A DNA stretch of 64,000 nucleotides from Selaginella moellendorffii (Eukaryota; Plantae; Lycopodiophyta): NCBI RefSeq assembly GCF_000143415.4, contig NW_003314264.1, positions 3,171,710 to 3,235,709 of the forward strand. The letters are read 5' to 3'. The notes below the pieces were generated by a model, which searched no databases, had not been told where the DNA came from, and was given only the letters and a program-made list of their open reading frames with translations. Positions 10,563 to 53,652 of this stretch are shown here, piece after piece; within the stretch, counting starts at the first letter, position 1, and each line of letters opens with the position of its first letter. A program made the translations under genes and the position numbers.

Positions 10563-12092
10563 ATGATTAGCAGAGCTCTTCTTCTTCTTCCTCGGTGTAG
10601 GTCTAGCGATCGCCACGATTCTTTCTTCTTGCTTGCGCGGCGATGCTGCCATTACGCGTCGCGGCTGCGTCGCTGCACGGACTTGGCGCAGGTGGAGGAG
10701 CTCCAGGCGGAGCTCCTTCGCCTGGATGGCAGCGATCGCGGCACTTTCGTCGGGAATCACCTCGTCCAGATGTTTGGCAAGCTGGGGCGCCTCGATCAGG
10801 CGTGGCAGGCGTTTGCCAGGATCCGGCAGCCCAATGTCTTCTCCTGGAACGCGATTCTTGCCGCGGCTGTGCGGCACGGGGATCTTCAGCGCGCGCAGGG
10901 TGTTTTTGACAGGATGCCGGAGAGAGATGTAGTCTCCTGGACCGCTCTCATCGCCGGATCCTCGCAGAGCGGCGATCCGGAGCTTGCTGTAGAGATGTTC
11001 TCGAGAATGCAGGCCCAGGGCGTCGTCCCCGATCGCGCGGCCTTTCTCAGCGCACTGGACGCGATCTCTCTCGCGCAGGCGCTCGAGTCTGGGATCTCGG
11101 TCCACGGAGCGATTGCTCGCCTGCGGCTGGAATCCGATGCCTTGATTGGGAGCGCGCTTATAAACATGTATGGGAAGTGCCAGGACGTGGCCCATGCAAA
11201 GGTGGTATTCGATTCGATGGAGCGGCGCAACGTTGTGGCCTGGACAGCGATCGTCGCAGCAAATGCCCAGAATGGGCGTGTTCTTGACGCCAAGTTCTTG
11301 TTCGAGAAGATGCCGCAGCAAGACATCGTCTCTTGGAACTCTATGATCTCGGGCATGGGGAAGAACCAGTATAACAGGGAAGCTCTGGATCTCTTCCACG
11401 CCATGGAAGCCATAGCCATGCTGCCGGAGAAGAGCACGCTCGTGAGCGCCATCGACGCCTGTGCGAATCTACCATCTCTAGCCGAGGGCCGACGAATCCA
11501 CTCCAGGATAGACGAGACGATGTTGGAATCCGATAGGGAGATCCAGAACGCGCTTGTCAACATGTACGGGAGGTGTGGCGACTTGGAAACGGCGAGAGCG
11601 CTTTTCGATCGAATGCGAGACAAGAATGTGATTTCGTGGACTTCGGTGATCGCGGCGTATGCCCACCACGGGCATAGCCGCGCAGCGCTTGAGCTGTTCT
11701 ACGAGATGGCCTGCGAGGGGCAAGCCCCCAACGAGATCACGCTCGCCACCCTCCTCTACGCTTGCAACTACACGGGACGGATCAACGATGGTGTCTACTA
11801 CTTCATGTTCCTCCACCTCGAGTTTGGGATCCCAGCGACGCGGGAGCACTTCGTGTGGCTGATTGACGTGCTTGGGCGATGCGGGCAGCTCGAGAAAGCC
11901 GAGGAGCTGCTCAGGAGCATGCCGTTTGAGCCGCAGCCGCTCGCCTGGCGGATGCTCCTGGGAGCTTGTCAATCCCACAAGGATGTCGAGAGAGGTGAGC
12001 GGCTGGCTCGCCATCTATTTGCCACAAACTCTGTCCGCTCGTCACCGTACGTGGTGCTCTCTAACATTTTCCTCTCGAGCTCAGCGTCATAG
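10563..12092 (+). CDS. PLS-class pentatricopeptide repeat protein with E domain and no DYW; probable organellar RNA-editing factor
   Basis: Intronless 509 aa ORF with repeated DVVSW/ALINMYGKC motifs, ending WRMLLGAC...PYVVLSNIF; transit-peptide-like N-terminus. Confidence 0.93.
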   Translation: MISRALLLLPRCRSSDRHDSFFLLARRCCHYASRLRRCTDLAQVEELQAELLRLDGSDRGTFVGNHLVQMFGKLGRLDQAWQAFARIRQPNVFSWNAILAAAVRHGDLQRAQGVFDRMPERDVVSWTALIAGSSQSGDPELAVEMFSRMQAQGVVPDRAAFLSALDAISLAQALESGISVHGAIARLRLESDALIGSALINMYGKCQDVAHAKVVFDSMERRNVVAWTAIVAANAQNGRVLDAKFLFEKMPQQDIVSWNSMISGMGKNQYNREALDLFHAMEAIAMLPEKSTLVSAIDACANLPSLAEGRRIHSRIDETMLESDREIQNALVNMYGRCGDLETARALFDRMRDKNVISWTSVIAAYAHHGHSRAALELFYEMACEGQAPNEITLATLLYACNYTGRINDGVYYFMFLHLEFGIPATREHFVWLIDVLGRCGQLEKAEELLRSMPFEPQPLAWRMLLGACQSHKDVERGERLARHLFATNSVRSSPYVVLSNIFLSSSAS

Positions 12093-27600: not shown

Positions 27601-28011
27601 ACTCCTCCTCGGAATCCCTCTATACAAGGCCGTGGAGAAGCGTGAAGAGCGGTGAATTGCGATCAAATTCTCATTCCCGGGTGAATACAGATTGAGAGAC
27701 AGAGAGAGAGAGAGAGAGAGGCTATCATCTCGCTCCAGGCAGCTCTCGCGGCGAATGAAAGTGCGCGGAGCAAGGATTCGTTGGGTTTAATCCCTGATTC
27801 TTCGAGAAGAAGAGGCGTCGAAGGCGCAGGGGAAGTTGCCCGCGCATGCCCGCAAAAATCTTGGCCAGTTTTTCCCTCGCCCGAGTCGCTCCACGCCGCC
27901 CGTGTCGTTCTCCGGAATTGGCCGCGTCGCTGCGCTAGCTGCTGTGTGGCTCGCTCGCCTCTGGCTCGTAACGCCCTGGGCATTGACCAGATAAATGCGC
28001 TGCTGCTCCCC

Positions 28012-29280
28012 ATGGATTCCTCGTCGTCGGAGCAACTGGCCGGGTTCGGGATCGTGGGGCACCAGTTTGGGAGCGGCGCTAGCAGCTATGTCCTCGACAT
28101 GGATCGAGTGGAGCCGCCGTTTCTCTGCGCGGGGGAGGAGCACGCCACGGACTCGTCCAGCCAGTCAAGCCCAGCCGGCGCCGGGATATCCATTGACTTT
28201 GGCGGCGGCATGGAGTCAACTGAGGAGCTCCACTACCTCATCCATGGCGGCGACCGCAGCGTGTTCGATCAATTGGACATCTTTGGGCAGCACAATTTCC
28301 CGCCGCTGCTCGACCCAGCCGCCGCGCTGGGCTGCGGCGACGCCCACCACGGCCAGCTCCCGGATTTAGACGAGCTGATCCAGGCCTCGGGCGTGGACGC
28401 GGTCGGATCCAGCAGCAGTGATGGCGAGGGCGTGGATCATCAGCACCAGCACCAGCACCAGCAGCACGAGGCGGTGCACGCTTCCGCGAGCTCGGCCACC
28501 TCCAGCGCCAGCTCCGACGCGGGTCTGTGTCCCTTGGGCACCAGCAGCTCCGGCGCCACCTCGGTCATGCAGCAGGCCCAAGCAATCCAGCCGGGCGAGC
28601 CATGGGCTCATCGCTTCCCTGATGTCGGTTTCACATCAGGCATGGCCGCGGATCCAGAGAGCAAGCAAGGGATGTTCTCGGCTTCCCAAGGAGGCAGCGA
28701 CATGGAGCATGCTTCTTCCCAAGCTCCCAACGAACAACATCAAGGTGGTGGTGGCGCTGGCGCTGGCGCCGGCATGGCAAACATGCGGGAGACCTTGTAT
28801 AGAATGGCGGTCTGGAGGCCCATCACGGCCACGGATTGCCTGGGCGGGAGCAAGCCCAAGCGGAGGAACGTGCGAATCTCGTCGGATCCACAGACGGTGG
28901 CGGCGAGGCACCGGCGGGAGAGGATCAGCACCAAGATCAGGATCTTGCAAAGGCTGGTTCCCGGAGGTACCAAGATGGACACGGCCTCGATGCTAGACGA
29001 GGCCATCCACTATGTCAAGTATCTCAAGTCGCAGGTCCAGGCTATGGAGATGCTGGAGCAGAGCAGTGGTGATCAACCCCTGCTCAGGAATTCATCATCA
29101 GCTGCATCATTAGCGTCCACAGCGACAGCAGCATCACAAACTGCTGCTCCAGGGATCTGTCATTTGTACAACGCGCACAGTGGAAGTGGTCTGCTGAATG
29201 GCAGCATCTTTTGGCCACAGCAGTTTTCAATGGACAGTGGTGGACTCCTAGTACAACAGGTCAACATTTCAGGATATTGA
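28012..29280 (+). CDS. HECATE/INDEHISCENT-type (subfamily VIIIb) bHLH transcription factor
   Basis: [14 protein letters not shown]...[54 protein letters not shown]; intronless. Confidence 0.92.
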
Positions 29281-31920: not shown

Positions 31921-34074
31921 ATGAAGAAGAAGCCGCCAAGCCCTCCTCCATTCTCGGAATCGACGGGTCTGCTGGAGCTTGTGACGCCGCCCAAGCCGCA
32001 TTTAGTCGATCGGCGCCTGGATGCGTCGTCTTGCTGCCGGCAGTTGATGCTGCAAGGTACCAGATCTTGAGGGCTAGGTTTTCTCTTTCTCGCCGATAAA
32101 CTTGTCAATTCTCTTCCAGAATCTCCTCAACGTGATGCCGCTGTCGGGAAAGAGAATCGCTCGGCTCGAAAATACAAGCAATCAAAGGCGATGAATGCCA
32201 AGAACGTTTTGGGGGAACGAAGCGTGAATCTTGATCGTGGAGCTGCTCCGGAGCAGAATGTAGCAGAGCAGGTTGAAATTTTGGCTGAAAATCTCAACGA
32301 TCAGGAGCCCCGGCTGGCAGACCAGTCAGGACGTGAGAATCTTGACAGAGGCGGAAGCGCTGAGAAGATGGAAGATCAGGCCAAAGAAAGCTTGGTACCT
32401 GGTGCAGTGACGGCATTTGTGATGGATCCAGCCGAAATTCAAGAAGGTGGAGAGGTGATGGAACTTTCTCCGAATCTTAGCGACATATCCAAGACAATTC
32501 TCGACATTCTCGAGGACGACAGCACGGAAGTGGAGAAGCCGCCGTATCATCCAGTATCAAACCCATTTTCACCACGCCCTCGGTTCTTAAGGCTCAAGCG
32601 AGGTGGGAAAGCTCAGCAGCCTTACGATCCCGAGTCCAACCCACTATCTCCAAGGCCAGAGTTTCTGAGATACAATCCTGTCAAGCACCGGGAGTTTGTG
32701 CAAGCACACGAGACTGGTCGGGTCGAGAAAGCTTTGGTTTTCTCGGACGTTGGCAGTGACGACGGTCAAGCTCCAGAGTTGCCCGGTTTGAAGCGAAGTG
32801 CCTCTTGTCCCGATCTGACCATCACAGACGACCAACTTCCACTGCCACCTTTGGGAAAAACTCCGGCTGTTTCGCTCGAAGGAAAGGCACAGGCAGACAC
32901 GCAGGAATGCAATCACAAAATCCCAGTAGCTTCTGGACAGAGCATGATCTTGAGAAGAGCGTTGCTTCTACTGCTGTCTCTCAGCTTTCTTGCGACAGCC
33001 TGCGTCGAGCTACGAGGTCGCTCTGGTTTCTTCAGGGACTTGGGACAGAAAATAGTGTTTCGGACGCCGGAACGGAGAACCTCGGAAGCTGAAGGCTATC
33101 CCGGAAACTGGGGAATCGTAACCGGTGTGTCCAATCACTCCCTGCTGATGGTACCCGAAGTCCGCGAGAGGATTCTTCTGTCGGTTTATGGTGAAGATGG
33201 GGATGATGCTGTGATCACTTCAACGACAGATGAGCTAAGGAACGTGGAAGTTGCGGCAGCCTTGACCGACACAGAGGTTTCGGAAGCAAATGAGCCAGGA
33301 AGTGTCGAGGCGGCAAGCGACGAAGTTGATATGGTGGCGGAGCAAAAGAACGCTGAGGCAAAATTGGCAGAGAGTAGCGGAAAGTGCTCGAGGTTTGAGT
33401 GGGAGGAAAGCGTGGCGAAGATGTGTCTGGAGAAGACCATCTTTCGGCATACCCCAGGTGGTGAACTTCCCGTTCCGACAACTACAACGTTTGAAGCAGC
33501 GGCTACAGAGATAGAGGGCTTGGAGGATGCGGCATTGCTCGAATTCTTCAAGAGCATAGCTGGGGAGCCAGTGGATCACACAAGAAACTCGAGCACGCCC
33601 GGTTTGCTTGGACAACGCTTCGCCAACATGCTGGGCTCACTGTCGAGAAGCTTGAGGACTTCACTGTGGAGCAAGCTAGCAGTTGAAAGCTTATCGGTGC
33701 TCGGTGTTGCCGCCACGGCTATCATCTGGCTGAGGAAGAGACGACGGGCAGGCGTAGCGCGCGCCTCAGCAGCAGCACCACTGGCAACATTTTCTCGTCG
33801 CGGAAAAACGCAAAGCGCTGCAACTCGAGAGACGATGACCACCACCAGCAGTGAAGAGAGCGGATCGGGCAGCACCAGCACAAACGAAGGCTACGGTAGC
33901 TTCACTGCGATGGAACCACTGGATTCGCGGGTAAGTTCTTCCTCGCGTTGATTCATTCAAGCTCTTACATACTGTTTATCTGCTTGAAACCAGGGAGAGA
34001 TCAAAATCACGCCGGTGAGAAGGTCTAGTAGGATACGAGGCCGTGGTACTCAGTCACCGATGCTCAGAGCGTAA
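31921..34074 (+). CDS. Plant membrane protein with PYDP..N.LSPRP.FL motifs and C-terminal YGSFT / TPVRRSSRIR, function unknown, 3 exons
   Basis: 586 aa core ORF with in-phase flanking exons, two SPRP motifs and two hydrophobic segments. Confidence 0.75.
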
Positions 34075-34178: not shown

Positions 34179-37100
34179 ATGGCCGTGTCCGTGGCAGCGG
34201 AATGGAGCGCCATCGCCAACAGGTACTACCGGAAGCAGGAGATCTATCGCATGGCGTGGCACAATGTGGAGCTGAGCGGCCACAAGGTAGCGTGCGCGCG
34301 ATTCGGGGGGATGATCGCCATTATCAGGGACGACACCAAGATCGTCCGGCTCCGATCCGAGCCAGCTCGCCCCAAGCTTCTGATATTTCGATCCTCCGGC
34401 CTGCTGGTCGCATCGATAACCTGGGACCGGCCCGGCGGCCGATTGATCGCCATGGGATGGTCCGACGAAGAAATCCTCCACTGTGTGATGCAAGACGGGA
34501 GTGTGTTTCGATATGACGTCCACGGGAAGCTGCTACCCGATAAGGTCTGGTTTGGACAGGAATGCTGGGATCAAGGGATCATGGAATGCATCATCTGGGG
34601 AAATGGGATCGTCTGCCTCACCGAGGCCAACGCGGTGTTTTGCATCCCGGATCTCGGCTCCCCGCAGTTCGTGAAGCTCGCGCAGCTCACTCTGGAAGAT
34701 CCTCCTCACTGTATGGCGATCATAGAGCCCCAGCACACGGTGTCGGGGAGTGTGGAGGTTTTGCTCGCGGTGGAGTCGACTGTGATGGTGGTGGATGGCG
34801 GATCCATCCAGGATCAAGGGACGACGATAGGACCGCTCGGGAAGATGGTAGCTTCTCCTAACGGGAGCTACGTCGCGTGCTTCACTCACGATGGACGGCT
34901 TCTGGTCGTCACCAGTGACTTTTCAAAGACCATCTCGGAATTCGACACTCAGGTTGGACGCAAAGAAACACTTTTTCTGGTTCTTAGTGTTGCATGCTGT
35001 TTTGCAGTCTGCTCTACCGCCCGAGCAGCTCATATGGTGTGGAATGGACAGCGTTTTGCTCTACTCCGACGACAGTGTGCTCATGGTTGGTCCTTACGGC
35101 GATTGGACCAAGTACACTTACGACGAGCCTGTAGTGCTTATTCCCGAATGTGATGGCGTCCGAATCCTGTCCAACACGTTCATGGAGTTTCTCCAGCGGG
35201 TGCCGGACACGACGGTGTCTATTTTTTCGATTGGGAGCACGTCTCCGGGGGCAATGCTCTACGATGCTTACGACCACTTCGCGAAACGCAATGCCAAGGT
35301 TCGTGGCTTGATGCTGGTGTTATTGTATCTTTGACATAAAATGCTCTACAGGCCGATGAAAGTATCCGAATGGTTGGTTCTTCTATTCCTGACGCTGTTG
35401 AAGCGTGTATAGATGCTGCTGGACAAGAGTTTAGGATGGAGTTGCAAGACACGCTAATGCGTGCAGCAGTTTATGGTAGAACTTTCTGCAGGTATGCTGC
35501 CATCTACACTGAAATGTTGCACATTCTTTCTCCTGGCAGACGCTTCTCGAAGACCCGCATACGTGAAACGTGTAAGACATTACGAATACTGAATGGCGTA
35601 AGGGATCCAAATGTTGGCATTCCCCTGACGCTGCAGCAGTTGAAGGTGCACACTTTATTGATTTTGTATCAAGGTCACGCATTCCTTTCTACAGGTTTTA
35701 ACTTTGCCAGTCCTTATCGAGCGACTTGTGAATGAACACAAGCACTTACTTGCCATCAGGATGTCGGAGTACATGGGTCTTAGTCCAGTAAGCCTTTGAA
35801 ACCATTCAAGTTCTGCAATACCGAGCTCTGCCAGGCAGGAAACAGTTGTAGTTCATTGGGCAGGCGCGATGATTACCGCGGCCACCTCAGTACCAGACCC
35901 AGAACTATGCAACCTTCTACTGGAGAAGGTACCTTTATGCAAGTCTTACATGCTCGTTTAACTTTCGTGTTACCAGCTGAAAATGTATTCTGTGTCATAC
36001 GCTGCAATTGCTGCTCATGCTTACAGAAATGGCCGGCGAACTCTGGCTGCACTTCTTCTGGAACACGAACCACGGTCTTCCGAACAGGTATGTTGAATGG
36101 CATAAGAAAAAGCTGGTCATCTGTTGTTTTTCAGGTTCCCCTTTTGACTAGCATGGGAGAAGAGGAAAAAGCTTTGGGGAAAGCCATCAAGAGTGGAGAT
36201 ACAGACCTTGTTTACTTCACGTTATTTCATCTATGGCAAAAGGTACGCCTTCGTCTATTCTCAAGTTAACACGCGGATGAACTTTTTGCGATTGTAGAAA
36301 TCACCGTCAGAGTTTACACGTGCTGTTCAAGACAAGCCTCTTGCTCGCAACCTTTTTATCGCCTATGCGAGGTAAGCTGTCGGTTAACTATGCAAGCCTT
36401 TCATTTGTTTTCTCTTTGTTTTAGACAAAATGAACCCGATGTTTTGAAGAAGTTCTTCGCATCAATTGGACAACTTCATGTACGTCTTTGTTGCTTTGTT
36501 TATTTATTATGAATCCGAGTTGCAGAGGGTTGGCGAGCTTCTGTTATGGGAAGCGTGGGCGCAATCCAAAAATCCTGTCACTCGACAAGGATCTCCTCTT
36601 CAAGGGCCTCGAATTCGTCTTATAGAAGAAGCTCAACGCCTGTTTTCTCACAGCAAGGAGCACGACTTTGAGGCGAAAGCTTGTGACGAGCAAGCACGGC
36701 TACTGAAGTACGCTAGTTTTTATGTGATCGACATCCCATTCTACTTTTTTATTCCACAGGATCCAGCAGGAACTAGAAGCAAAAACTGGCAAAGCGATTT
36801 TCGTGGACACCAGTGTCAGTGATACGATTCGGACATGCATTGTTTTGAAAAATCACCGAGAGGCGCAAAGGATTCGTGTCGAATTCAAGGTAGTCTTTTC
36901 TCGCTTGGAATAATCTCCATTGTTTCCGTATCAGGTCCCAGACAAGCGATTCTATTGGCTCAAGGTTCTGGCGCTTGCATACATCAAGGACTGGGACGCG
37001 CTCGAAAAGTTTTCGAAAGAGAGAAGGCCGCCAGTTGGTAAGAAAAAGCTCAGCTCCAAGTCTTTTGCTTCACTTCTCTGATTCTCTCGTCCAGGATTTA

Positions 37101-45300: not shown

Positions 45301-46070
45301 AACCTCTCTCCTTTTTTTTTCTCTCCCCCTGTCTTTCTAAAAGTGGGAGCAACTTAACCCAAGAGCCTACTACACCTCCCCCCCTCTCTCATTTTCTTCC
45401 CATTCATTTGATCTCCTAGTTTAATAGGAGGTAAAAAACTTTTTGTGGGAGCTTGGGGGGTTGGGGGTTTGGTGAATTGGTGGTGTTGGGAGCAGGAGAG
45501 AGCAAGCACCAGGTAGCACAGATCTGATCCATTCTGTAGCTTAATTGATCCAAAGGCTCCCTTGCTACAGTGTACTGTGCAACCAAGAATTCAGGGGAGA
45601 GAGCATCAGCAGCAGCAGCAGCAGCAGCAGCAGCATCAACAAGAACAAGAGTAGGGGAGAGAAAAAAAAAGATCTTTTAGACACCAAGTGAAAAGCAGAG
45701 CACCCCAAAACAAGGGAAGTGGGAAAAGGGAGAAAAGAGAAGCTGAGATATGGAAGAAGAGGGAACAAGAAGCAGGAACTGGCTATGGCTGTGGAGGGGA
45801 ATATTCGCGTCTCCCATCGTGGAGGAGGGAGAATGGAGGGCAAGGGAGGGGTAAGAGGAACCCAGGATTGGACTGGAGTTGGGCTAGGAGAGCTAGTTCT
45901 AGTTTGGTCTTCTCTTTTTTTTCCTGGATTCCCCTCTCTCTTCTCTCTCTCTCTCTCTCTCTCTCTCGCGTGGTGTGTGTGCGCATTGATTCAGGTGTAG
46001 GACTTTCTCGCTGATTGATGGTCCATGGAAGATCAAGCGCTACCGTGTTGATCGGGGTGGGAGGATCCCC

Positions 46071-48509
46071 ATGGCGGCATCCAGTGATTCGGAGAGTAAG
46101 AAGAGCAGGAAGGAGGAATTGGGGGGCGGTGGGAGCAGCAAGGAGGAGAAATCCGATACCGCGGCGGGCGGGTCAGATCAGGCCCAGCAGCAGCAGCAGC
46201 AGCAGCAGCAGCTGGCGGTGGTGCCATCGCCGGCCGCCGGCGGAGGCGGCACGGCCAATGGCGCGGGCGGTACCGCCGGCGGTACGCAGCCGGCGGCAGC
46301 ATCCTCCGCCGCGGCGGCTGCCAAGGAGCGCGACTACATCTGGACCGAGGACGCTGTGCACGTCCTCCTGGATCACTTCCTGGAGAAGTACATGAGCTAC
46401 GAGAAGGGGATGATCCGCAACGCCGACTGGGTGGAGATCGCGCAGCGCGTCAACCAGCAGCTGGAGGGGAACAAGCCCGTCAAGACGCCCGAGCAGTGCA
46501 AGAACAAGGTGGACAATCTCAAGAAGCAGTACCGCAAGGAGCGGCGGCGCGGATCCCTTGGCCCCTCCAGCACCAATTGGGCATTCTTCTCGCGGATGCA
46601 CGACATCTTCGAGAGCGATTACAAGAAAACAGGGGGTGGTGGCGGCGGTGGAGGTGGCGGCGGCGGCGGAGGAGGAGGAGACCGAGATCCTGGCGGCGCG
46701 AGCGAGGACGTACCACCGCAAAACAATTCCAATCCCGCCCCCGCCGCCGCCGCGGCTGCCAACAACATCGAGGACGCCCACCACCACCACCGCTTGCGAT
46801 CCGCGGTGGTGCCGGATCACTACCTGGCGTCGCGCGAGTTCATCCGCAAGCAGCAGGAGGAGCTGATGCAGTACAACAAGCGGCCATCGCGACGGAGCGA
46901 GACGCCGCCGCCGGGGTCTGGCGGCGCGCCGATCTCCCAGCAGCACCACCCACACCACCACCACCACCACCCCATGATGCTACTGCCCGAGTCCTCACAC
47001 ATGGCCTTCCCGCCGCACGCATCCAATCACCACCACCGCGAGTCCGGCAGCACGCCCGCGCGGAAAAAGGCCAAGTCGGACCGGCACGAGCAGCACGGCG
47101 TCCCGCACGGCATGACGCACGGCATACCGCAGCGGCACCACGACCAGCGGCACTTGCAGCCGGCGGGGCCGCCGCAGCACCACGCGGAGGGATCGGGGCC
47201 GCCGTCGTCGGACTCGGGCGGCGGGGGTGGTGGCGGTGGAGTGGCTGCCGTGGAGGGATCCACCAAGCACGAGCGGAAGCTCCACCGGCACCAGCTCGCG
47301 GCGCTGCGGCGCGACTTCATGGAGGGATTCACGGGCTTCGCGGAGGTGATGCTCAAGATCGAGGTGGCCAAGATGGAGATGCAGCGGGATCTGGAGCGGC
47401 AGCGGGCGGAGATGGAGCTCCACCGCACGCAGATGATGTTGAGCAACCAGCTCCAGCTCGCTAAGTACCTCAAGGCCAGCCCGATACCGCACGGCATGCC
47501 GCCCGACGGCGGCGGGGCGGGCCCCTTCTGGCCAAACTTCGGCTTCACCGACGCGAATGCCAATGCCGCCGGCGGTACCGGCGGCCCCGGCGGCACGACG
47601 CCGCGGCTCCAGCTCGCCATCCCGATCTTCCCGGACTTTACCGCGCTGGATGCCGTGGGGCCTTACGAGGTACTGCATTTGCTCCCCAACGTGGAGGTGC
47701 TGTTTGTGAGCCACCAGCCTGGGCTGTACGCCGCCGGCATGGGAATGCTCACGTTGCAAGCCACCGCGTCATTCGACCAAGTGACGCGGCCGCAAATCCT
47801 CGTCGTGCCCGGCGGTATGGGCACCCGGAGGCTGCTCCAAGACCGAGTTATACTCGACTGGATCCGAAAGGTACGTTTTCTTCTTTAATGGCTTGAGTGG
47901 AGACAACAAGTTTTTGTTGTTTGCTACTGATCAACTTGGCTGCTTCTGTCCTCGTTCCACTCGATGCCTACTAAAGTTTCGATTTTTTCGTTGCTTTTGG
48001 TGGTGGTTCTTCCAGGTTCACGAGCATACCCTCTACACTGCTTCCGTTTGCACTGGATCGCTGCTGCTCGGTGCTGCCGGATTGCTAAAAGGCATCGAGG
48101 CAACCACGCATTGGAACTCGCATGAGCTGCTAGCGGAATTTGGAGCCAAGCCAGTATCCTCGAGGATAGTCCGCCAGGTTGGTTTCAATCACCCGCGCTC
48201 CTGTATAACTGTTTGTTCTTCCAGGGGAAGATCATCACTGCTGCTGGAGTGTCCGCTGGGATCGACATGGCTCTTCAGCTGGCCGCTCTTCTAACGGACG
48301 AGGCCACCGCCAAGACGCTCCAACTTTTCATCGAGTATGATCCTCAGCCTCCGTTTGACAGCGGCTCGGTGGCCAAGGCCGGGCCCGAGGTGGTGAGCAG
48401 GGCCAAAGAACTGTCATCCAAGCGACTCCAAGCCGTGGCTGGTGCCAGTGCTGCTGCTGCCGCTGCCGCCGCCGCCGCCGCTGCTGCTACTTCCAGAGCT
48501 CCAGCGTGA
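46071..48509 (+). CDS. Trihelix (Myb/SANT-like, SIP1/ASIL type) transcription factor fused to a DJ-1/PfpI isocyanide-hydratase-like domain; 3 exons, ~748 aa
   Basis: Exons 46071-47870, 48016-48177 and 48225-48509, all GT-AG phase 0. Trihelix WTEDAVHVLL..W.EIA..KT.EQCKNKVDNLKKQYRKE..WAFF; coiled coil; DJ-1 domain TALDAVGPYEV, VVPGG, SVCTGSLLLGAAGLL..ATTHW, AGVSAGID, EYDPQPPFDSGS. Confidence 0.9.
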
Positions 48510-49087
48510 AGCAGAGAGAAGAAAAGTCTACTTGTTCTACGATGCTGCTGCTGCTGTTGTATGTACCAAAAGACGATAGAGGAGAGTGAGGGAGGGAGAC
48601 GAAGAGCTCTAGAATCGAGACGAGGAACGAGCTGCGAACGACTGGAATTTCCTTTTCGGAAGAGCTTTGGTCGGGGAGAGAGATGATCCAGTTTTCCAAG
48701 AACACACCCGGAGAAAGAGAGGCTCCACAGCTCGAGAGTTTCCATTGATCATTGGTACGCTGCTGGGGCTCTCGCTCTCTTTTCATCTCTTTCTTTGCTC
48801 CATCTCTTTTTCTTCCCGCGGGACTAACAGTTCTTCTCTGCTAGCTCTCTCAGCTCTCTAAATTTTTTGTTCGTTTTCTTTTTTTCTTGGGCTCTCGTTC
48901 ATACCGATTTGTGTACCGCTGCTGCTGCTGATTGATTGACATCACTGTGCGTTCGTTTTTTTTCCTTATATAAATTCTTGGTAGCCTCTGAGACGAATAA
49001 AGAAGAAAAGAACTTCCTTCCTCTGTGGCCGAATTTTGCCGCTAAAATTTGAAAGTTTAAATCTCTGTAGGGTTAGGGCACGAGGAG

Positions 49088-52773: not shown

Positions 52774-53652
52774 ATGAGGGTGTTCCCTGGATTCCCTGTT
52801 GCCCAACGAGTAATCGCCGCTAGCAACTCGATTGATTTGCCCTACCACCTCCGGCCTCTAAAGCTCGGCTGCCGCGCTCTCCCCCAGCCCGTGGAAAACG
52901 AAAAGTTTGCCGTGGACGTGGACGCGAGCTTTGCATGGGACTCGGGCATTGTTGTACAGGAGCGCGGAGCTTGCGTACGGAGGAGAGCCTTCCTGATGGA
53001 CCTGGACGACGAGGCGTTGTTGTGGAGGCAAGTCCCACCGTTGGATTTCCCCAGCGTGGAGTCGGCCGCGACATGCAACGGTCGGATCTACGCCCTGGCC
53101 AGCGGCGCCGTACACGCGTACGACGGGGTGGCGTGGCGGCGGCTCGAGGAGCTCGGCGCCGCGTGCCTGGAGAGGCTGTTTAGCGTACGCAACCGGCAGC
53201 TGGTCGGGGCCTTTGTGTACGGAGGCCCGAGGTTGGAGCTCCGGGCGCTGGATCCGGTGACCCAAAGTTGGTCGCGGGGCTTTGGATCCGATCATGGCTT
53301 GGAGGGCTCTTGCCTAGCCAGAGACAAGTCGAGGAAGCCGATGGTGGCGGCGATTGGAGACGCGATTGTGATGACCCGATGGGTTTCTGGCGATGGCGGC
53401 GCGACGAAGAACAGATTTTATGCGTGGGATGGATCGAAATCGGCGTGGCAAGGGATGGGCGGAGATGGGGACTACATGATCGAGGGCGTTTGCACCCAAA
53501 TTGCCCCAGCAAATGCAAGTGAAGTATATGTTTCCAGCCTGACGAAGGGCGTGATCGATAATAGGTCTGTTTACAAGGGTATGGTAAGGTGGCAGAGCTG
53601 GGAGATATGGTGGGAGCTGGTAAATAGTGGGCATTTGGTATGTGCCTTCTAA
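52774..53652 (+). CDS. Intronless unknown protein, possibly a kelch/beta-propeller-like fold
   Basis: 292 aa ATG-initiated GC-rich ORF with repeated Trp-terminated blades (WRQVPPL, NGRIYA..YDGVAWRRL, LDPVTQSW). Confidence 0.55.
   Translation: MRVFPGFPVAQRVIAASNSIDLPYHLRPLKLGCRALPQPVENEKFAVDVDASFAWDSGIVVQERGACVRRRAFLMDLDDEALLWRQVPPLDFPSVESAATCNGRIYALASGAVHAYDGVAWRRLEELGAACLERLFSVRNRQLVGAFVYGGPRLELRALDPVTQSWSRGFGSDHGLEGSCLARDKSRKPMVAAIGDAIVMTRWVSGDGGATKNRFYAWDGSKSAWQGMGGDGDYMIEGVCTQIAPANASEVYVSSLTKGVIDNRSVYKGMVRWQSWEIWWELVNSGHLVCAF

Follow-up and report, generated by a model that had tools for sequence, protein, structure and literature searches.

The closest described counterpart of the protein considered here is the isocyanide hydratase (ICH, also InhA; PDB 3NON, EC 4.2.1.103) of Pseudomonas fluorescens, which converts isocyanides into N-formamides by hydration and in which Thr102 is part of the nucleophile elbow beside Cys101. 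Asp17 of this enzyme acts as the general acid/base (PMC12570138), and Cys101, the nucleophile, gives rise to a thioimidate (PMC12570138; bioRxiv 10.1101/524751). ICH is an obligate homodimer; the diglycyl motif at Gly150 has been described as highly conserved, and the G150A substitution lowers kcat about 6-fold while the thioimidate, a covalent intermediate, builds up (bioRxiv 10.1101/524751). In Arabidopsis, all members of the DJ-1 superfamily are tandem two-domain proteins (PMC3160306). The subject of this report is a gene of the lycophyte Selaginella moellendorffii found in a stretch of 64,000 nucleotides (NCBI RefSeq assembly GCF_000143415.4, contig NW_003314264.1, positions 3,171,710 to 3,235,709 of the forward strand), which is called the window below and whose first letter is position 1. 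It is very likely that this gene joins a trihelix factor in frame to a complete ICH-type domain, and that the domain was recruited from a family already resident in plants, with no direct capture from a microbe.

As read from its open reading frame and splice sites, the gene lies on the forward strand and has three exons and two phase-0 introns, and it encodes a protein of 748 residues. Exon 1 (46071-47870), a single open frame of 600 codons, carries the start codon, the trihelix body, a linker and the first 88 residues of the ICH-type domain. The second part of this domain is encoded by exon 2 (48016-48177; 162 nt, 54 codons) and the third by exon 3 (48225-48509; 94 codons plus the stop at 48507-48509), which also encodes a poly-Ala tail. 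Intron 1 (47871-48015; 145 nt) follows ...DWIRK and intron 2 (48178-48224; 47 nt) follows ...IVRQ, both with GT..AG ends. The 3' untranslated region spans 48510-49034, as far as the contigs extend, the contig of run X3 stopping at 49034. Intron 1 is removed in contigs from all four runs examined, which come from four separate studies, and intron 2 in contigs from three of those four. The runs had been classed as RNA-like by an automatic guess, and the intron-free contigs argue for RNA. Contigs are continuous across 46799-47868 and are then joined to 48014, and a single contig of 2651 nt (46226-49034), from which both introns are absent, holds the trihelix body, the ICH-type domain and the 3' untranslated region together. 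The junction between the trihelix and ICH-type parts lies inside exon 1, and the reading frame stays open through it. Because spliced contigs were obtained from four studies, the junction frame is open and the neighbouring genes are those of a plant, the trihelix-ICH gene is a real, expressed gene of S. moellendorffii.

The region 47607-48509 holds one DJ-1/PfpI domain, which starts at 47607 and is divided into three exon pieces; these were searched and placed in trees separately, not as one joined sequence. Pfam PF01965 matches the exon-1 part (E 1.5e-5, profile 4-88) and exon 2 (E 8.7e-6, profile 96-142), with pieces of 25-26 bits each that fall just below the cut-off of 26.6 solely through the piecewise searching. 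P. fluorescens ICH is the top PDB match for each of the three pieces, and the matches are collinear along chain positions 7-229 of 3NON, whose numbering is shifted by 3 relative to that published for ICH. More specifically, part 1 (47607-47870) matches chain 7-91 with E 5.4e-12, part 2 (48016-48177) matches chain 98-145 with E about 7e-16 (6e-16 to 7e-16), and part 3 (48225-48506) matches chain 147-229 with E 1e-13 to 4e-13. The Asp codon of TALDAVGP (47649-47651) aligns to Asp17 of ICH, the D of QQLDLTGP, and the Cys-Thr codons of SVCTG (48049-48054) align to Cys101-Thr102 in the nucleophile elbow, which reads SVCTG in both proteins. The ATTHW motif is also the same in both, and the motif EYDPQPPFDSGS of the C-terminal extension (48333-48368) aligns to EYAPAPPFNAGS of ICH, the residues E-Y-D-P..P-P of this extension being invariant among relatives. 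The window domain is thus a single DJ-1/PfpI domain of ICH type. A preliminary description of the same DNA, made from its letters alone, had proposed one DJ-1 domain here with these four motifs, an ICH-like character based on the Asp/Cys/Thr set and the C-terminal extension, and two spliceosomal introns of 145 and 47 nt; the PDB alignments of the three pieces and the contigs bear out each of these proposals.

All 45 positions that are invariant in 17 full-length relatives are kept in the window domain, together with 31 of the 34 near-invariant family positions. Among the four runs there are nine coding polymorphisms, of which two lie in the ICH part, and every one is synonymous (chance about 3e-6), although the nine may sample just two haplotypes of one plant. 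By these measures the window gene, its ICH part included, appears to be under purifying selection. The domain can reasonably be expected, if not with great confidence, to be catalytically competent. The loop that gates helix H counts against this expectation. At 48240-48251 the window domain has Ala-Ala-Gly-Val where ICH has Gly149-Gly150-Gly151-Ile152, so that neither the diglycyl motif (Gly150) nor Ile152 is kept (A-A-G-V vs G-G-G-I), and with Ala at the G150 position the clade may not be one of true isocyanide hydratases. Because the diglycyl motif is not kept, the domain is classed as ICH-like only, and isocyanide hydration is a putative activity. The A-A-G sequence is common to most plant homologues and to the nearest bacterial relatives; since it is present in stand-alone relatives, it is a feature of the clade and not decay after fusion.

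A mechanism may be proposed by reference to ICH. Once a copy of a resident plant ICH-like gene had been joined to a trihelix gene at its 3' end, the ICH-type domain would dimerise in the manner of ICH. The Cys thiolate of the domain, for which Asp would donate and accept protons, would attack an isocyanide-like carbon to give a covalent thioimidate, which water would then hydrolyse. On a trihelix factor, the result would be either a detoxifying enzyme tethered in the nucleus or the formation of an adduct that tunes the activity of the factor. The second option, a regulatory sensor on the trihelix factor, resembles the DJ-1-AraC (GlxA-type) regulators of bacteria, but is unlikely. More speculative still is a covalent small-molecule sensor, in which a long-lived thioimidate from an isocyanide or a related microbial electrophile, helped by Ala at the G150 position, would cause a shift of helix and dimer that alters DNA binding by the trihelix domain. 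If true, such a covalent sensor would amount to a 'one-component' regulator in a plant, one that converged on the bacterial DJ-1-AraC proteins and derives from a family of putatively bacterial origin.

The rival explanation that survives best, unlikely as it is, holds that the ICH-type domain is neither enzyme nor sensor any longer and that its only role on the trihelix factor is in dimerisation, if it is not simply a passenger. In favour of this, ICH itself is an obligate homodimer, the coiled coil already allows trihelix factors of this type to dimerise, and the diglycyl motif is not kept. Against it, the Asp, Cys and Thr residues are retained together with every one of the 45 family-invariant positions, and the occurrence of A-A-G in stand-alone relatives removes the suggestion of post-fusion decay.

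The origin of this domain is revealed by its plant relatives. A search with the domain of a Ceratodon homologue recovered stand-alone ICH-like proteins, 219-260 residues long, from mosses (Ceratodon, with five paralogues, and two species of Sphagnum), liverworts (Marchantia paleacea and M. polymorpha, the protein of the latter being named "cyclohexyl-isocyanide hydratase" by NCBI) and lycophytes (three Diphasiastrum genes and SELMODRAFT_91146), with bacterial proteins ranking next at 53-58% identity. The window pieces have 62-71% identity to the plant proteins and 57-60% to the bacterial ones. Exons could be rebuilt exactly for six of the plant genes, from Marchantia, Ceratodon (two), Sphagnum, Diphasiastrum and Selaginella, and both intron sites as well as phase 0 are common to the window gene and all six of these stand-alone genes. 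Intron 1 stands after ..W[IL][RQ]K and intron 2 after ..[VI][RQ][QED] and before GK[IV][IL]T, and the middle exon is exactly 162 nt in all seven plant genes compared, the window gene included. Because site, phase and the 162-nt exon are common to bryophytes and lycophytes, both introns, and the family with them, predate the split between the two groups. In a quick tree, moreover, the three exon pieces, entered as separate rows, all fall within a plant clade of 28 rows with support of 96 in the Shimodaira-Hasegawa-like approximate likelihood ratio test (SH-aLRT); this clade comprises all named plant proteins and 13 unnamed transcript-type proteins. The shared introns and the placement in the plant clade together argue that the window domain was derived by fusion from a resident plant gene.

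Individual members of the family show features of their own. Marchantia polymorpha has two tandem ICH-like genes encoding 236 and 226 residues (L001, 179-1350 and 3001-4085), which lie on one strand about 1.6 kb apart. The Diphasiastrum protein O6H91_15G023900 (P0026) has an insertion of 12 residues at the conserved intron-1 site (alignment columns 132-143), which is probably a splice site mis-called in the public annotation. Ceratodon M758_11G004800 (P0001; L003, 6001-7493) has an acidic/Lys-rich N-terminal extension of 65 residues, a Cys-rich C-terminal tail and a third intron, in phase 2, and is a further lineage-specific elaboration of the ICH-like family. The plant family is already present in databases under automatic names, and surveys group its proteins with DJ-1 proteins of the glyoxalase III type. 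A literature search found no paper on the ICH-like family of non-seed land plants, nor any relevant link of ICH, isonitrile hydratase or PfpI with land plants, Marchantia, bryophytes, trihelix or Selaginella.

Beyond the plants, the affinities of the family are bacterial. In a careful tree built without the window pieces, the plant clade (support 100/96) has as its sister a group of Acidimicrobiia-type proteins (96/89), and both lie within further bacteria (98/87). The family search gave 7974 scored matches, and at least 594 of 600 matched stretches in the bacterial/archaeal genome collection encode a relative. The best 80 bacterial loci are mostly from soil Actinomycetota (Solirubrobacterales, Acidimicrobiales, Thermoleophilia, Streptomyces, Nonomuraea), with up to 61% identity to a Diphasiastrum protein, and the look-alikes in a protein atlas are likewise Actinomycetota clusters. 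Identity between plant and bacterial proteins (to 61%) is as high as identity within the bacteria. Judged by these sequence comparisons, the plant family probably stems from one old transfer from Actinomycetota-type soil bacteria, no later than the origin of land plants.

Three considerations weigh against this account. The root of the tree was set by one weak outgroup (P0002, a metagenomic protein discussed below), and a root on the plant stem would undo the nesting of plants in bacteria. Among the best 120 matches there were no names of ferns, seed plants or chlorophytes, only bryophytes, lycophytes and one transcript of Netrium digitus (Zygnematophyceae), and to find ferns, seed plants and most algae missing there is weak evidence of absence, as remoter orthologues could sit below these 120. 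The Netrium transcript itself has plant-like N- and C-terminal extensions. The careful tree groups it with the Acidimicrobiia-type bacterial proteins (98/94), but a single clade of Netrium and plants was not rejected in the approximately unbiased (AU) test (p 0.34); it may push the origin earlier, or may be a contaminant.

The Netrium extensions, this AU result and the uncertain root are also what favours a second rival, in which there was no transfer and the family would be an ancient one of eukaryotes or streptophytes, passed down vertically and since lost from most lineages. This explanation is improbable, since the plant clade lies within a very large bacterial diversity, the Netrium transcript falls among Acidimicrobiia-type proteins in the careful tree, the best 120 matches name no chlorophyte, fern or seed plant, and plants resemble bacteria as closely as bacteria resemble one another. 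An old bacterial transfer, followed by recruitment of the resident gene to the trihelix factor, is the more probable history.

Very improbable is a transfer from a bacterium or fungus that was recent and confined to this lineage and was followed by the gain of two introns. The nearest non-plant relatives are indeed bacterial, and their 57-60% identity is near the 62-71% found with plants, but both introns match those of six stand-alone plant genes in site and phase, all exon pieces fall within the plant clade, and no fungal protein is found among the best 120 matches. The preliminary description had supposed a bacterial or fungal domain that was acquired and then intronised. Its bacterial half agrees with the nearest non-plant relatives, mostly Actinomycetota, its fungal half found no counterpart among the best 120 matches, and the order of events must be given up in the face of the common introns and the plant clade. 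Continuous orthologues from green algae upward, which it had named as evidence to the contrary, were not found among the best 120 matches, but the Netrium transcript is compatible with the plant clade. Its further claims, that the domain is distinct from the canonical tandem plant DJ-1 proteins with Glu and that it is not contamination, are both upheld. A divergent paralogue of canonical plant DJ-1/glyoxalase III, which would share the PF01965 fold and the Cys elbow, is rejected as next to impossible on PDB scores (AtDJ-1D matches exon 2 alone, with E 3e-4 against 6e-16 for ICH, and exons 1 and 3 not at all) and on its tandem domains and Glu, as opposed to one domain and Asp. A contaminant or an assembly chimera of two genes, for which nothing speaks beyond the bacterial look of the domain, is rejected with equal firmness on the open junction frame inside one exon, the junction and splices carried by contigs of four studies, the plant flanking genes and the occurrence of the region on two haplotype scaffolds.

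The other half of the protein is that of a plant trihelix factor. The trihelix Myb/SANT-like domain PF13837 (Myb_DNA-bind_4) occupies 46341-46607 (residues 91-179; E 6.3e-16, 59 bits, cut-off 27), and the C-terminal helical block of coiled-coil type that marks this trihelix subgroup occupies 47310-47471, with 67% identity to residues 239-292 of the 308 residues of P0142. The nearest trihelix relatives are P0142, a transcriptome protein, and P0144, a Diphasiastrum protein of 303 residues; in both, the coiled-coil block is the second matched stretch, and both end about 15 residues beyond it. Because these nearest relatives stop just after the coiled coil, the fusion is a derived state. In the window protein, the ICH fold begins with LQLAIPIF, which directly follows a Gly-rich linker about 45 residues long. 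No protein with trihelix and ICH-like domains together was found among the best 150 of 1611 matches in a HMMER search with exon 1 against 1.84 billion representatives, all of these being trihelix-only or ICH-only, and it must be held against the novelty of the fusion that a weakly matching one could lie below the best 150. A word search across the junction found no fusion protein, and one that used all of exon 1, in which low-complexity candidates dominated, gave four trihelix proteins of angiosperms and nothing else. The trihelix-ICH architecture is thus new, with none elsewhere among the matches listed, and the ICH domain itself belongs to a known enzyme family.

Several features of the trihelix part and of other trihelix proteins may be recorded here. 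Runs of poly-Gln, poly-Gly, poly-His and poly-Ala are abundant in the body of the factor (46071-47600), where GC content reaches 65%, compared with about 50% for the window. Within the His/Gln/Gly-repeat part of exon 1, contigs of three runs skip 661 nt at 46291-46953, with GG..CA ends and 21 letters on one side; the skip is most likely no intron but an artefact of assembly at the repeats. The protein ends in an Ala-rich tail of 16 residues (48441-48491), which stand-alone relatives do not have. Another enzyme-type fusion is seen in three angiosperm proteins (P0122, P0123 and P0125; Dionaea, Aristolochia), in which the PF13837 trihelix is combined with a PF00696 amino-acid kinase domain.

The adjacent open reading frames of the window are those of plant genes, namely a pentatricopeptide repeat (PPR) gene at 10563-12092, KIN17 at 19282-20454, a SAC51-like bHLH gene at 27781-29280 and the N-terminal part of Vps16 at 34179-35153. 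KIN17 is intronless, and its protein is identical on two S. moellendorffii scaffolds of assembly GCA_000143415.2, which represent two haplotypes; this match identifies the species. Exact look-up of the open reading frames at 32191-33948 and 52774-53649 gave no matching record. A collection of 5.8 billion proteins contained none that covers the trihelix-ICH region, which suggests that a model of this gene is missing from the public Selaginella protein set. Upstream of the start codon, the contig of one run skips 58 nt with GT..AG ends at 45509-45568, which may be an intron in the 5' untranslated region of the trihelix-ICH gene or part of an upstream transcript. In the 3' untranslated region, single-nucleotide polymorphisms are clustered and accompanied by small indels (2, 5 and 7 nt) at 48633-48707 and 48951-48956, in contrast to the silent-only changes of the coding part.

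Non-seed land plants thus carry a conserved ICH-like family, and its bacterial affinity makes it a candidate for transfer around the time of plant terrestrialisation. Shared intron positions can date what looks like a 'bacterial gene with introns' far more firmly than similarity scores can. With the trihelix-ICH gene, the recruitment of an enzyme-type domain to a eukaryotic DNA-binding protein becomes tractable, and the family offers a route to the meaning of isocyanide-type chemistry for plants that live among Actinomycetota.

The genomic context of the bacterial relatives is also revealing. Of the 80 nearest bacterial loci, 43 have an AraC-type helix-turn-helix (HTH) upstream of the ICH-like gene, on its strand and with less than 250 nt between the two, as counted by tblastn of AraC HTH segments; clustering of open reading frames was noisy, with spurious antisense frames in high-GC DNA. 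This upstream HTH is the end of a GlxA-family regulator made up of a DJ-1 domain plus HTH, and the bacterial ICH-like enzyme is habitually paired with a DNA-binding protein that bears a related sensor domain. Exon 2 of the window gene also matches the FtrA and GbdR models, and neither HTH_18 nor HTH_AraC gave a Pfam match on any window exon. The metagenomic protein P0002 (374 residues) consists of the C-terminal half of GlxA, with its AraC HTH, running into an ICH-like domain, and is probably a read-through or frameshift call over the regulator-enzyme pair common in Actinomycetota. A bacterial protein of 523 residues (P0267), annotated 'GlxA family with amidase domain / YHS domain', has two stretches that match the N-terminal part of ICH, and is a further DJ-1 fusion architecture.

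Compared with P. fluorescens ICH, the window domain is collinear over its full length at about 45-50% identity by eye, with Asp17, Cys101, Thr102, ATTHW and the EY.P.PPF..GS extension all aligned; it differs in having Ala-Ala for Gly149-Gly150 and Val for Ile152, and in forming the tail of a 748-residue DNA-binding protein. With the canonical plant DJ-1/glyoxalase III proteins (AtDJ-1A-F) it has the DJ-1/PfpI fold and the nucleophile-elbow Cys in common, but those proteins have two tandem domains, Glu at the acidic site and no ICH-type extension, whereas the window protein has one domain and Asp. The stand-alone plant ICH-like proteins are of one clade with it and agree in the two phase-0 introns, the 162-nt exon and 62-71% identity; they are single-domain proteins with their own start codon, in place of which the window gene has the Gly-rich linker from the trihelix gene. 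Like P0142 and Diphasiastrum O6H91_07G089000, the window protein has a trihelix (40-47% identity) followed by a coiled coil (52-67% identity), and to the roughly 300 residues of those proteins it adds long His/Gln/Gly-rich inserts and the ICH-type domain. Finally, as in the bacterial regulators of GlxA/FtrA type, a DJ-1-superfamily domain and a DNA-binding domain are found on one chain, a resemblance that is functional only. The order of the domains is reversed, the DNA-binding domain is a eukaryotic trihelix and not AraC, and the fused paralogue is of the enzyme type and not the regulator type; the trihelix-ICH fusion arose independently of the GlxA/FtrA-type regulators.

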